This document shows positions 35,858 through 44,400 of a stretch of DNA of 64,000 bases, in pieces. The notes under the pieces were generated by a model that did not search any database, was not told the origin of the DNA, and worked only from the letters and a program-made list of their open reading frames with translations. The translations under genes were made by a program, and so were the position numbers. This DNA comes from Saccostrea cucullata. Taxonomy: Eukaryota. How positions within the stretch are numbered: the stretch's first letter is position 1; each line of letters opens with the position of its first letter. The DNA lies in contig NW_026940018.1 of the NCBI RefSeq assembly GCF_032062105.1, forward strand, positions 186,001 to 250,000, given 5' to 3'.

Positions 35858-38800
35858 ATGTCAATAAACAAGAACATGGAAGACCCAAAGGAAAAGGTAA
35901 TTAAGTTTTAATAAATCATCTTTTTTATAAATTTAAATTGTATTTTCAATGCTCAAATGAATAATCTATCCTAGTATTTTCTCTCTTTTCTGCTCATGGC
36001 TGTGTGTATAACGTAATGAATGTACTTTAACAACCCGGACGAAAATTATTACTAGGCCGCCATTTTATCGTCTAAAAATTATATTCTTATTGGTGTGGTG
36101 AAATTTAGTTTCCTCCATTTACCCCTTGAGTTGTTTTTTAAATCACATAGTTTGTAAAATTCGTTTATAACATTCCAAAAGGCTATATCGCTGTTTGTTC
36201 AAACATTTTCTTGGAGATGACATGAGTAATCATGATGAAACTTTCAAGAATAATCATAATCAATCAAGTTGTACAATCAGCAGTTAAAAAAATTTCACCG
36301 TTGGATATTTGGTTAACATTGTGTAAATTTTGTACGCGAATATTCTTGTAGATCTATGACAAGGGCATCTTGATGAAACCTTAGAAAAAAAAACTCTTTC
36401 AGCTTTAACATATACAGACAGAAATTTAAGCTTTCAATTCTTTAAAAATAAATAGAATAATTATTAATTAGTTCATAATTTGTGAAAATTATTAGCCTAT
36501 GATATTGTAATAACTACATATTTATAACAATATTATAGTATACAAATACATTAGAGTATACAAATGTCTCTGAGTATTTCTGAGTATTTCAAATGCACAT
36601 TTCAGATATCTTGGACATCCATAGTTCAGCACTTTGATCCTCGTCTAGTAAAAACTAATTATAATCACGAAGAAGTTTCTATTATTGAGAATATTGAAAG
36701 TATATTACTCCAACATAGATGTATATCCATAGAAGGATGCCGAGGCAGTGGAAAGACGCACTGTGCAGTCGTGGCCATGCATTACTTGGCAAATGCAGAA
36801 AAATTAGCTTTCATTACTTCTCCTTCACAATGGGAAAATAACCTTGACAAAAACCATGACAAAACTCATGTTATCCTTGATAATGCTGATCTCTCTGATC
36901 CAAACTGGGTCAAAGTTATACAAAATGCATGCGAAAAACAACAACAGAGATTTGTTATTGTTACTTTTAAATCTACTTCAAGTCACGGTATAGAAAATGT
37001 ACATCTGCGCAATTACCAAATACAGTGGAATTCAGAGGACCAAGAAAACTTGAGGACGCTGTACGAAATAGTTCAAAATCCTTATTATGACGATAGGATT
37101 GGATTTCCTTTGTCTTGCTCAATGCTTCGAAGATGGCATGTGGAATACTCAAAGAAGTTTCAGAACCCAAATCACTACTTTGATGAAGTGCTCCAAAAGA
37201 TAGTCAAAACTGACTTTGAAGAATTTTGTAGGATTTGCAGTGTTGCTATGGTCGTAGGGGAATGTGATACTCTTTGTTTGGAAAGTCAAGATAAAAAAAG
37301 AATAATAAATAATATCCTTTGTTTAAGAAATATGCGAAGAAATCCCGGACACTTTTCATATAGTGATTCAGTTTTCCAGCCAGAGGAGGATATTTTAAAA
37401 CATTTAAAATGGATGTCATTGTCTGTGGAGAATCATCTGCGATTGCCAGCTCTGAAATGGCTGCTGTCCTATGACCCTGGCTTGCTATTGGATAATATCA
37501 GTGTGTCGGTCTTGGTGACTTTTGCAAAACTTGGACAATGCGATAAAACAGGAAGGCGACTGGTAATAGGTGAACAATATCACCTAGCGATTATACAGAG
37601 GATTGCCTGTGGGTTATCCGGAATTGACAAAGATATACTTGAAAAATCCCCTTTAATGAAAGATTCTGACTTTTTCTCAAAACTTTTTAAGCAGTTGTAT
37701 ATGATATCTTCTTCAATTTATCCCTGTGAAAAAATCCATGCAAATTTTGAGAGGGAAACTATGGCATTTCGTTTTCTTTCAAAATTAGACGATTTTAAAG
37801 GGTTTTTCAAGAGTTTTCTTACATGGAAAAACAAGAAAGAAATGTTGGAATTAAAATCAACTCTGCAGTTCTATCTTGATACGAGTATGAGTGGTGATTT
37901 TCCCAAAACATTCTCATTCCGACTTAAAGAATATGAGGATTGGTCAAATATTGAAGCAAAATTGTTTGCCGGTGAAAATTGGGATTTTGCTGATACAAGT
38001 AAGCACTAGAATTGATTTTGTAGTTAAAAGTTTCTCTAAGATTGTAAAATTTGCATACGGTTTCGTCATACATATATCTATATGTAGAATGTAAATTATT
38101 TGTTTTCTTTTTAGTCTTCCTCTGCTATGATTCACAAGACTTTCCACGATATGAATACCACGTGTCATTGATACGAAAACTACTTGAAAGAGTGGCAGAT
38201 ATAGAGAAAACTTCAAAGGAAAGAAATATTGATACCAGTGATGACACGTACTGGTCATACCCATTAATTATGACACGCGGGATAATTTCAAAGGACAATA
38301 TCGACTTACTTTCAAATGAAGGTTTTTACCAAGAAGAGGGTAACTAAAATACTACGTGTTTTATCCATGTTCTTCAGTATTAATATTATTGATTAATTGA
38401 TTGTATATTGTTTAACGAGAATTTTTCACTCATATGGAGACGCCACCACTTGCCAGTGGAGAGCCGCAAATTTTGTCCTATACTCGACACTCAAGACCAT
38501 TGATCAGGGAGGGATCTTTTTCGTGCCAACACCTACTGCGCCATAGGACCTCGGTTTATACGGTCTCATCCGAAGGACCGGTCTCCACGTCCCTCAGTGG
38601 GATTGGAACCCGCAACGTAAGGATCAACTCCTTACTTAGCGACTCTAGAGCAGACGCTCTAATCACTGCGCCACGCGGGCGACTATTAAAATTATTAAAA
38701 AAGATAAATAAAGCATTTAATTAAGACAATCATTTTATATTTTTAACAGTCATCAAAGAATCCGCATTTGTGGAATATCTTGAGGACCATTCTCCGTTAT

Positions 38801-40405
38801 GCATCGTTTGTTTTATGACTTCGAAAGGAAAGCCAACACCATCAGAGAATGTCAAAAAGGTAAAACAATTATGTAAAAATATCTTAACTCTGGAAATGGA
38901 GGGATAATTTTTGAAATAAATTCTTATGTGAGTGATTTCTCTTTCAGCTGCGAAGAACTTTGCCTGATTTAGCGAAACGTCATAGTGGTATTTCGCTAGT
39001 CGTCTTATTGGTAACTGATCCTAACTGCAAGGTGCTGACTGAAGAATTGTCTTATAGAAATGTTCAGATAGTACAGGTGTCCAATAGAAGAGAGGATGTG
39101 CGAGAGGCTGTTACTTCCCTCCTTGAAGAAAAGTTACTTTGCTTTATTGAAAAGATGGCAAAAACTCGCAAGAGCTTAACGATTAACAGATCTCTATTGA
39201 CTCAAAAGAATGCGATTTGTAAGAGATTAAACCGACGAAAGTATGCGACAGGTAAAAGGAAATCTGAAATGAAACCGAGTCGAGTGATCCCAAAGATGAT
39301 GAAGATGGTCTTGGATCAGTAAGTACGTTATACATTTTATATCAGAAGAATGAATGGTCATTTAACTAAACGAATTTGATTTTATTTGCCAGTATTAGAT
39401 TTTCAGGAAGTCCAGTTAAGCACATTCCCATATACTTTCAGGCACAAGCAATCCATTGTTAGATACGGCTTTTCGATGGACAAGTTTCAGATATATGTTC
39501 ATGAAAAAACTTGCCAAGAGGTTACAGAGAATATTTGGCAGGAATTGCAACAATTTCGAAAGAGTGGCGAATTTACTTGGAAAACAGAATTAATCTCCAC
39601 AACTGGAGAATGGGATGTACAACCTCATTCATTTGTTAAGCAAGGTGATGTGTGTTTCTCATACCGTGGTCAAGGAGATATTGCAAGTGATTCAGCCATG
39701 CAAAGAGGACACCATGAAGGAACTGTTGGAGGTTTTGCCAAAAGGAAGAAAGTTGGGGAAAGAGATGATCTTGTTGTTTTTAGTTGTAATCACTTATACA
39801 AGCCCAAAGAGAAAATGTATGCAAAATTTCATGTAAATGCTAGACCTCAGCTGGTTGGAGAATGTGAAAGAAATTTTTCTCCGAGAGATCTTTCTCTCGT
39901 CATTACCGAAAAAAAGCTTTATGGCAATTTTGATCAAATTTTTAGAAACCCGAACGATGATAAGGTATCGGCAAAAATTTATGAATGTGATTTAAATGAT
40001 TTGGTGGGTGAAATTGTTCATAAGAAGGGTGCAAAGACTCACTGGACGGATGGAATTGTCAAAGGTGTCCAACATTTCAATGATCAAAGTAATAACGGCT
40101 CTTTTGAAGTTCTTTTTATAAAAGGGACAAATGATAGCTTTTCACAGCCTGGGGACAGTGCTGCGTATGTTATTGTAAATGGATATGACACTGACCTTAA
40201 AACGATAAATATCATTGGAGTACTTCGTGGAAAATGGGATCCACCTCCACAGCAAAGAAATTTGGTGCTGTACAAAAGCGAAGAACCGGATGATGAAAGA
40301 GAGAAAGAAGATGATTCAGATTTAATCGTTTGTGAGGATCTTAACTCTGCCATTAACGCATTAGGTCAAGAAGGATATAGCATAACATTTCATGAAAATA
40401 TTTAA
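35858..40405 (+). CDS. Gene E: nSTAND3-like P-loop NTPase fused to a C-terminal trypsin-like serine protease (~1027 aa). Exons 35858-35896, 36606-37998, 38115-38339, 38750-38859, 38948-39251, 39393-40405
   Basis: Walker A GCRGSGKT, Walker B HVILDNAD, sensor strand FVIVT, IGFPLSC; protease motifs GTVGGF, SCNHL, DLSLV, KKGAKTHWTDG, FSQPGDSA. Junction phases are consistent; the exon 5/6 boundary is ambiguous. Confidence 0.8.
38389..38683 (-). mobile_element. tRNA-derived SINE in intron 3 of gene E
   Basis: A box TGGCGCAGTGA, B-box-like GGTTCCAATCC; body and tail shared with 19663-20010. Confidence 0.85.
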
Positions 40406-41447: not shown

Positions 41448-44400
41448 TTAAGTTTTTGACAGTACACGATCTGCAAGGGCTCTTCGGATGATACTGCGCT
41501 CTCTTCTCATTCCACCGAAAATGGAACTATTTTCATTAACTCTTCTGGACAAATATGGAAGAACTTCATCAACAGTACCATAAGGTATTGATTTATGGAT
41601 CATATAGCCAGTCTGACCTGATGAGAAAGAAAACAAAGGGTTTTGTATCTAAGTTTCAAACATAACTTTTGACACTTTGACTTAAAATCAAGGAAGACTT
41701 TATGATCAATGCAACCTTTGTTTTTGTAATTAACATACAACAATCATTGGATGTATGAAATCTTATTAGCCTACATGTATTTCCCAAATGTCGATGAAAT
41801 TATAATTATGTTTACCCAAAGACAGGGATATGAAGTCGGACATTCCATAAGTCTGACCGAAGAAAACCTTCTGTTCCTTACTTCTTCGTGATATTCCTAA
41901 ATCTGTCATTCTGAAACACGGTTTTATTCATTAAAAAGTTTTGTATAAGCATCGAGGACACAGTGTTAGACAACTTAGGAAGTAGTTTTGGGAAACATTT
42001 CAAAATTTAATATCTGTACCGAAAGCCATATTTAGAGCGCTGTCATGGAAAACGCAACAGTTCAGCTCTTTGAATAATCAGCACTTTTACCTGGATATTG
42101 CTCTCTTAATAGTGGCTTCGTTGTGTGAAGCAATTATCGTGCTGAATTTTCCAGGATGTTTTGCGATGTTATCCAACATAATGTCCATAGAACGATAATA
42201 ATTTGCTGACGTTTTCTCGAAAGTTTCGCAAACAGGATCAGGGTAGCCTTTCTCTTTTGCCAGCGACCTTTCTTTGTGTAAATAGGCACCCCGCACAAGT
42301 TTAGCACCAAAGGATATACCATGTGCCTGCATTAATGCGATGTCTTTTGCGAGAATACTTGGAGTTTCCTGTAGTGAATAAATTGAAACAAGTTTTTTGT
42401 AATGTAGCTAATTGTATGACCTTAAATGTCAAAGAAGTTTGGAACCAAGGATATGCCATGCGCTTGAACAAATGCGGTGTTTTTCGACAGAATATCTAGA
42501 GTTTACTTTGGAGTAATCTTTGTGACAATTTCTTCACAGCAAAATATATATTTTAAGACAAAAAAGTAAAAGAAAACTGACCTTGAGGTAATTTTGGTAG
42601 GTATAAAACACAAGTGGGGCGGAACCGTTGCTGTTCATCATCATGGCCAGAGTCAATAAATTTAAACACGGGTTCAGGTAAGTGTACTCTGCATCCACCA
42701 TAACTATTACGTTTTTCTCCTTAGCAACCTTTAATTTATAAAAAAGATTGTATGAATATTGCCCTTCCTTTTAATATATTTTACATTAAGTACATTACCT
42801 CACAAATCTGTTTCATTCTGTATAACGCTTTGTTCAATTGTTGGAGTTCTACGGATTTCAAGTTACCCAGCTCTGTTATCTGCAAAAGAATGAACTTTTT
42901 CCCAAATATGTCATGTGAGAAAGTTTTCCAAACATAAATGATTTCTTTGGAATTACCTATTGGAAAAAAGCTTTTATGAGCATTTATCTCCTACCTCATT
43001 GGATGTGTTCATCGAGTTCGCAATTTTCTCCACTACATTTTGTTGAGCATTTGGACGTGGAATTTCCAATGAAATCGCTTTCTGTATTGTCATTTAGTAA
43101 AAAAGGAAAAAAAGTGTAATTTCTAGTTTACAAAAATTAAGAAAGAAAACATTGGATTTACTCCATTATAAAAAAAAGCATACATTTGAAAAATCCTGGA
43201 TAGATATTACATGTAGATACTAGTAGATATGATGAGAAAGTTTGAAAAGAAAAATTTCAATACAAACGCAAAGATCGAGAGGGAACAATCCGGACGTTTT
43301 GATGTGCATCATCGGGTTCTGGCTCCCAAGTTTTGAAGTCATTTCCAAACAATCCAGCATTATCTTCAGATTTTTGTCAAATATTTGATCAGCATCTCTG
43401 TAAAAAACGCTCCTTTATAACATGTAAAAAACAATAATTTAATCAAATCAAACTATCAAAAAACATCATCTTTAAAATAAGATTTTTTTAAAAAATATTA
43501 TAAAAACGTTATCTTGGGGGATTCATTCATAATCTTCAAAAATAAAGTCATAACTAAGCTTCAGCAATAAAACGTTTCTTGTACAGGAAGAGGAAAAAAA
43601 CTCTCATACGGTCCGTCGTCTTTCACGTCTTCCTCCAACGCCACCATGACAAATGGTCCAATTCCGGCAGCTTGCAGACAGTCTACAGTTGTCTGAAGGG
43701 ACGCCAGGTCATGGCCTCCGACAAATTGTCTGTAGAAGGTTGGGCGCATCATCATGTTGAATAAAGGTCGGCCCATTAGTCGACGACTCCATGAGAGAAT
43801 CTTAATTAAAATAAGATATGAAATTCCTAAAATTGATTTGAAAAATATGTTTCCTTGTCAAATATTTCTTTTGAAACGGATTCCTGTATTTAATATTTTC
43901 ATGAACATAATCATCAGGAATTCCATTTCTTTTTTGTAGTATTGCAGAATGGCACATGCATCATGTGCAGCATATCTGTTTTATTTAGTTCTTATGATAT
44001 CAACTATTTTTGGTATTATAAGAGCATTTGGTTTATGATTGTCAATCAGTCTCTAAATGTTAAGTCAAGGATTAACAAAGCAAAAGAAAGATGCAAGTTC
44101 CAGATCGGTTGTACTCGATACTATAAAAGATGTAGTGAATATACAAGGAAAGTTTACCACTTCTAAAGCAGTTCTTTTGAGTTAGTTCACAGAGTTTTCA
44201 GTTGGCTTTTTTCTTTGACACTCAGACGAAATTCGCCAAATGAAAAATATACATGAAATATATACATTTATAATTTTTATATAGATAAATTCAGACGCAA
44301 AGTTTTCACAATTAAAAAAAAGGCATATAAGACAATAAATGCTTAGTATTGTCAACCTTTTTATGCGGTTCATCACTTTAAAAAAAACATTTACTTACAT

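Follow-up and report, generated by a model that had tools for sequence, protein, structure and literature searches.

The window, a 64,000-nucleotide (nt) stretch of the genome of the oyster Saccostrea cucullata, carries at 35858-40405 a gene of six coding exons, the product of which joins, on one transcript, an N-terminal nucleoside triphosphatase (NTPase) to a C-terminal chymotrypsin-fold serine protease of the PA clan. By its sequence the N-terminus is a degenerate member of the nSTAND3 family, and the protease half belongs to a cassette that bivalves combine with several different front ends. The most likely reading, to which we give a probability of about 0.45, would be that of a cytosolic protease that stays latent until STAND-driven oligomerisation switches it on; the case for it is stronger for a paralogous lineage of the LOC105335550 type (lineage 2) than for the window copy.

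The gene structure is well anchored. All five introns are bounded by GT-AG, and the RefSeq protein XP_062593044.1 (LOC134254536, S. cucullata, annotated as 'uncharacterized') contains every exon translation as an exact substring; our sequence searches were run exon by exon, and full-length comparisons used RefSeq protein records. In RNA contigs of a related organism, which come from four studies and are about 93-96% identical, introns 2-5, four of the five, are spliced out, and no junction for intron 1 is seen. One contig, 2436 nt long, spans 37395, inside the NTPase exon, to 40566 and joins that exon to the protease exon, bearing out the single transcript that had been proposed in an earlier annotation made from the letters alone (the sequence-only reading). 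For intron 5, an acceptor at 39407 and a donor near 39252 were considered and rejected, as they run into stops; the RNA uses 39318-39442. The only start codon conserved in S. echinata is ATG 35879, from which the protein measures 1026 amino acids (aa), against 1033 aa in RefSeq and the roughly 1027 aa predicted earlier. Hydropathy (maximum KD19 1.46) gives neither a signal peptide, in line with the same reading, nor a transmembrane segment, and no N-terminal effector domain precedes the NTPase, which begins at about aa 40 behind an in-frame stop upstream of ATG 35858.

The C-terminal domain shows the double beta-barrel fold of the PA clan. Its closest sequence relatives are rice NAL1 and yeast Ssy5 (S64), and by fold it comes nearest to alpha-lytic protease (the highest structural Z, 20.5) and NAL1; this agrees with the NAL1-like or bacterial-type S1 protease first suspected. 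His830, Asp862, Ser952 and the oxyanion Gly sit at homologous positions in the family alignment (Table 1), so that the residues of the triad once called apparent are present, as are the other motifs quoted with it (Walker A, Walker B, GFPLSC and K.G..T..T.G). Against Pfam Nal1_C (PF25819) the window protein scores 14.9 bits, below the cut-off of 26.1, and it has no Pfam match to NAL1_N (PF25608) or to Peptidase_S64 (PF08192); the latter is matched by 43 of the 61 members of the protease family, several paralogues passing its cut-off. Judged by these scores, the protease appears related to the NAL1 and S64 families, yet it stays under both cut-offs and is separate from NAL1. A word-based search with the protease exon gave no matches. 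The sole bacterial locus returned by our searches (L044) was spurious, the match lying in an open reading frame (ORF) unrelated to the protease, presumably RecO.

Between the helical region that follows the NTPase and the protease lie a middle alpha/beta domain and a pro-like domain. The former has no match in Pfam, in language-model features (Atlas) or in PDB profiles, and a TIR-like reading suggested by its first strand gained support in no search. The pro-like and protease part is matched in Atlas to S1 enzymes bearing Pro_Al_protease, and Pfam gives no match to PF02983 (Pro_Al_protease). Structural alignments to alpha-lytic protease and SGPB start at model residues 301 and 303, with a loop of low predicted local distance difference test (pLDDT) just ahead; the residues of the candidate self-cleavage junction near 776-778 are loosely conserved across the family alignment.

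At the other end, exon 2 scores 29 bits against Pfam nSTAND3 (PF20720; cut-off 27.2) over model positions 6-73 of 155, so that the proposed nSTAND3-type NTPase passes the Pfam check with partial coverage; the S. echinata orthologue, at 25 bits, falls just under the cut-off. Atlas features place the exon at 0.95-0.96 to nSTAND3 clusters, a Mollusca cluster included, and the S. cucullata genome holds many strong nSTAND3 matches. Walker A and Walker B are present on an ASCE core, followed by a GxP motif that we take to be typical of STAND helical domain 1. A fold search with the N-terminal model confirmed the P-loop fold without resolving its class, and the region where winged-helix and arm domains would be expected is helical, with pLDDT below 50. 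As had been noticed, ankyrin, TPR and LRR repeats are lacking: no repeat family matches the window protein in Pfam up to E=1. Neither NACHT nor NB-ARC has a Pfam match in it. Because it has no repeats and no NACHT, the window protein is not an NLR, and the earlier label 'NLR-like' has to be dropped.

The wider family shows what is conserved. Exons 3-6 make up the protease cassette, with intron phases 1-1-0-2 in each of the seven mapped genes that carry the full cassette. The front part, attached via the first phase-1 intron of the cassette, is nSTAND3, RING/B-box, HEPN_DZIP3-like (under cut-off) or short. Since the phase signature is shared and the N-termini vary, it is the C-terminal cassette that forms the conserved unit, with STAND as one front end among several. 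Named relatives of the protease occur in Saccostrea, Crassostrea, Ostrea, Pinctada and Mya. In the S. cucullata assembly the protease exon has 24 matches, some of them haplotigs; a near-identical copy (LOC134254616, G000:C22167:926086-929882, 6 aa differences) is probably an unpurged haplotig, and paralogue counts in the assembly are therefore inflated.

Lineage 2, the second nSTAND3-protease lineage, is found in both Saccostrea species and in Crassostrea gigas (LOC105335550). Its proteins score 70-72 bits for nSTAND3, against 29 for the window protein, retain the sensor-1 Arg and GDSGS, and match no repeat family in Pfam; a single ankyrin-like pattern in LOC105335550, absent from the window protein, had no Pfam support, and ankyrin remnants were rejected. 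The S. cucullata member related to LOC105335550 (G000:C9465, L025:5536-9745) reaches an nSTAND3 E of 6e-20 with the sensor-1 Arg and canonical GDSGS. In S. echinata, the 689-aa RefSeq model of LOC133205754 (L047:7083-11428) is N-terminally truncated, an intact P-loop lying upstream on the same strand. One lineage-2 member is a complete 997-aa ORF on an intronless contig of 3122 nt. The window lineage (lineage 1) and lineage 2 share faint N-terminal similarity alone (HHalign 67%), and trees neither join nor separate the two STAND fusions (approximately unbiased test, p 0.25).

The window gene has an orthologue in S. echinata (XP_061198020.1, 1012 aa), 64-84% identical by exon and with the same five introns; a Pro_dh gene lies downstream in both species, and this shared position supports the orthology. 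The ratio of nonsynonymous to synonymous substitution rates (dN/dS) between the two species is below 1 in every exon: 0.51 in the NTPase core, 0.43 in the protease, 0.47 in exon 4 (36 codons) and 0.13-0.23 in the helical region, exons 3 and 5 and the pro-like domain. The higher values in the enzyme cores fit relaxed catalytic constraint and diversification alike. Upstream of ATG 35879, at a distance of 60-86 nt, lies a 27-nt block that S. echinata shares without a mismatch; intron 1, for comparison, shows 62% identity and a longest identical run of 16 nt. Within the block is a kappaB-like site (35795-35804, minus strand), which is only a hint because the motif alone occurs in the window at chance frequency, with no enrichment.

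We propose, with the probability given above, that the cassette of middle domain, pro-like domain and NAL1/Ssy5/alpha-lytic-type protease is held latent, and that the nSTAND3 module with its helical region acts as the switch. A trigger, probably one that stems from a pathogen or from stress, would make the NTPase module oligomerise and gather the protease domains so that the active site forms; self-cleavage near residues 775-778 might come next, and the protease would then cut a signalling or death substrate. Both of the nearest precedents depend on assembly: in NAL1 the triad takes shape in the hexamer alone (PMC12012508), and the trypsin fused to Avs2 requires the STAND-driven tetramer to be active (10.64898/2026.08.25.746987). 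The STAND-driven switch is also favoured by the single transcript, by the S. echinata orthologue with its five conserved introns and dN/dS below 1, by a second nSTAND3-protease lineage in three species, by RING/B-box and HEPN_DZIP3-like front ends typical of immune proteins, by the lineage-specific expansion and, as a hint, by the conserved upstream block with its kappaB-like site. An immune or cell-death role of the window gene itself is something that we infer.

Several observations weigh against such a switch. The nSTAND3 match is partial; the N-terminal structure model has a pLDDT of 43 overall and of about 60-78 over the P-loop core alone; STAND proteins (SAMD9, Apaf-1, Avs4, Avs5) are prominent in the top Foldseek rows at E 0.02-0.08, which is not significant; and no sensor domain was identified in the window protein. 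The sensor-1 Arg, present in lineage 2, is missing from the window gene and its S. echinata orthologue. In the family alignment, Ala953 replaces in the window lineage only the equivalent of Gly196, a residue 100% conserved in one PA-clan survey (PMC3434108), and both enzyme cores evolve faster than most scaffold parts. Because of the Ala after the catalytic Ser and the lost sensor-1 Arg, the window copy may be a weak or dead enzyme.

The strongest competitor, unlikely though far from negligible, takes these changes at face value: the window copy would be a pseudo-enzyme (decoy, scaffold or dominant regulator), and the active STAND-protease the lineage-2 paralogue. The two lost residues, the weak nSTAND3 score beside that of lineage 2, a long branch and the raised dN/dS of both cores all point that way. 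However, two species that differ by dS 0.4-0.6 both retain His, Asp, Ser, the oxyanion Gly and the Walker A Lys, the dN/dS of the protease stays under 0.5, Gly to Ala is a small change, and diversifying selection would equally fit the fast evolution.

Somewhat less probable still is a release mechanism in which the protein, while folding, cleaves itself at the pro-junction, the bound N-terminal fragment inhibits the protease and its ubiquitin-dependent destruction sets it free, the STAND module serving as a tripwire or degron platform and not as an oligomeriser. NLRP1 offers an analogue for release through destruction of an N-terminal fragment. The protease start matches that of mature alpha-lytic protease, the Atlas matches to Pro_Al_protease-bearing enzymes and the Peptidase_S64 matches of so many family members agree with it, an E3 ligase would be at hand in the RING/B-box front ends, and in Ssy5 it is the removal of the prodomain by the proteasome that activates the protease (PMC3145550). 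Against this, the solved structure of NAL1, the nearest in sequence, has the N-terminal domains and the protease in one chain, the junction is loosely conserved and PF02983 is not matched. Improbable, in our view, is a signalling role outside immunity, in which the protease would process transcription factors or co-repressors much as NAL1 does in growth and Ssy5 in nutrient sensing. The two eukaryotic relatives that have been characterised do regulate development or nutrition, and RNA is present in many studies, but expansion, STAND/TRIM/HEPN-like shuffling and rapid divergence are hallmarks of immune genes. That adjacent NTPase and protease genes were merged by prediction is hardly credible: although no single RNA contig of the window lineage runs from the P-loop to the protease, the P-loop belongs to a single unbroken exon, the 3' part of which one RNA contig joins to the protease, S. 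echinata has the same gene structure, and lineage 2 provides a full ORF on one transcript-like contig.

Among known systems, bacterial Avs2-trypsin (10.64898/2026.08.25.746987) resembles the window protein in carrying a STAND ATPase and a trypsin-fold protease in one intracellular chain, and provides the model of oligomerisation-gated activity. It differs in its TPR sensor, which recognises phage terminase, and in its partner MBL substrate (the Avs2-trypsin-MBL system), whereas the protease of the window protein is C-terminal, NAL1-type and placed behind a pro-like domain, without repeats; PADLOC Avs models do not match the window protein, which lacks their effector-STAND-TPR order. Avs5 and the oyster nSTAND3 family share its NTPase family (PF20720), but in Avs5 the effector sits at the N-terminus, and repeats take the place of a protease cassette at the C-terminus (PMC12931631). 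The domain order was rightly seen as reversed insofar as the protease is C-terminal; as a departure it has precedent in bacterial NACHT proteins, where C-terminal effectors occur (10.1101/2022.07.19.500537). Rice NARROW LEAF 1 (NAL1) has no STAND, TRIM or middle domain. With Ssy5 the window protein shares the type of intracellular signalling protease with a large N-terminal regulatory part, though it has no S64 match and the comparison brought out no similarity to the Ssy5 prodomain. Alpha-lytic protease and the streptogrisins are alike in the small alpha/beta domain directly before the mature-N-terminus-like junction, but they are secreted bacterial digestive enzymes with 14-16% identity to the window protease.

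Table 1. Features of the gene and its product, in window coordinates.
Feature	Position	Strand	Remarks
Non-coding block, putative core promoter	35793..35819	+	27 nt, identical in S. echinata; kappaB-like site and AT-rich TATA-like stretch
Exon 1, coding part	35858..35896	+	ATG 35858 used by RefSeq, ATG 35879 conserved in S. echinata; phase-0 donor
Exon 2	36606..37998	+	predicted degenerate nSTAND3 P-loop NTPase (aa ~40-140) and ~330-aa all-helical region without recognisable repeats
Walker A (Lys63)	36735..36758	+	
Walker B	36867..36884	+	Asp-Asn where most lineage-2 proteins have Asp-Asp
Sensor-1 strand	36954..36974	+	without the Thr-Ser-Arg of lineage 2
GxP motif (GFPLSC)	37101..37118	+	aa 179-182
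Exon 3	38115..38339	+	conserved cassette begins; family FPR motif and long helix; joints seen in RNA
Exon 4	38750..38859	+	middle alpha/beta domain
Exon 5	38948..39318	+	remainder of middle alpha/beta domain and helical hairpin
Exon 6	39442..40405	+	pro-like beta-beta-alpha-beta domain (to ~39600), linker, chymotrypsin-fold protease, stop codon
Ser776-Val778, candidate self-cleavage junction	39629..39637	+	structural equivalent of mature N-terminus in alpha-lytic protease and SGPB
Catalytic His830	39791..39793	+	61/61 in family alignment
Catalytic Asp862	39887..39889	+	59/61 in family alignment
K.G..T..T.G motif	from 40022	+	
Catalytic Ser952, then Ala953	40157..40162	+	Ser 61/61; Gly at the Ala953 position in 59/61 family rows

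In RNA runs, the exon 2 region occurs in two divergent versions (e.g. 39 and 76 differences in about 600 nt, with in-frame indels), unlike exons 3-6, for which one RNA version is listed; the two versions reflect either highly diverse alleles or a paralogous copy of the NTPase exon. A high-copy repeat in intron 3 (38400-38690), SINE-like by appearance, has very deep RNA coverage, and other repeats lie near 35100-35200 and 35680-35790. Elsewhere in the window, a probable proline dehydrogenase gene has exons on the minus strand (41448-42701 and beyond), and there are a KCTD-type BTB ORF (54773-55666, plus strand) and a reverse transcriptase ORF (58699-61284, minus strand). Five cassette matches, one with internal stops, cluster on another contig (G000:C19117:14415-112317), and a single-ORF secretin-family G-protein-coupled receptor (L037:7343-9040, minus strand) lies about 6 kb upstream of a protease paralogue.

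In the literature searched, which covered few subscription journals, we found no functional work on the window gene and no description of the nSTAND3-protease architecture, of the bivalve protease family or of NAL1/Ssy5-type intracellular proteases in animals; the architecture is thus apparently undescribed in animals, as first supposed, and so, apparently, is a bivalve protease family with swappable front ends. In bacteria, STAND-protease fusions and C-terminal effectors are already known. Plants and yeast have provided the characterised intracellular proteases of the NAL1/Ssy5 type. In animals, STAND platforms as a rule recruit caspases or kinases via adaptors. Tentatively, and with the odds against it, one may imagine that bivalve cytosolic zymogen proteases of the NAL1/Ssy5 type have been exon-shuffled to immune sensors (nSTAND3, TRIM, HEPN-like), the STAND members forming an animal 'protease resistosome' that would drive caspase-free cell death or immune signalling and converge on Avs2-trypsin. 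If true, a STAND platform with a serine protease of its own would be a different firing route for an animal immune switch. The oyster family moreover provides naturally occurring front-end swaps on a single protease cassette, and LOC105335550, a well-expressed Pacific oyster member with intact motifs, makes the idea testable in a farmed species.
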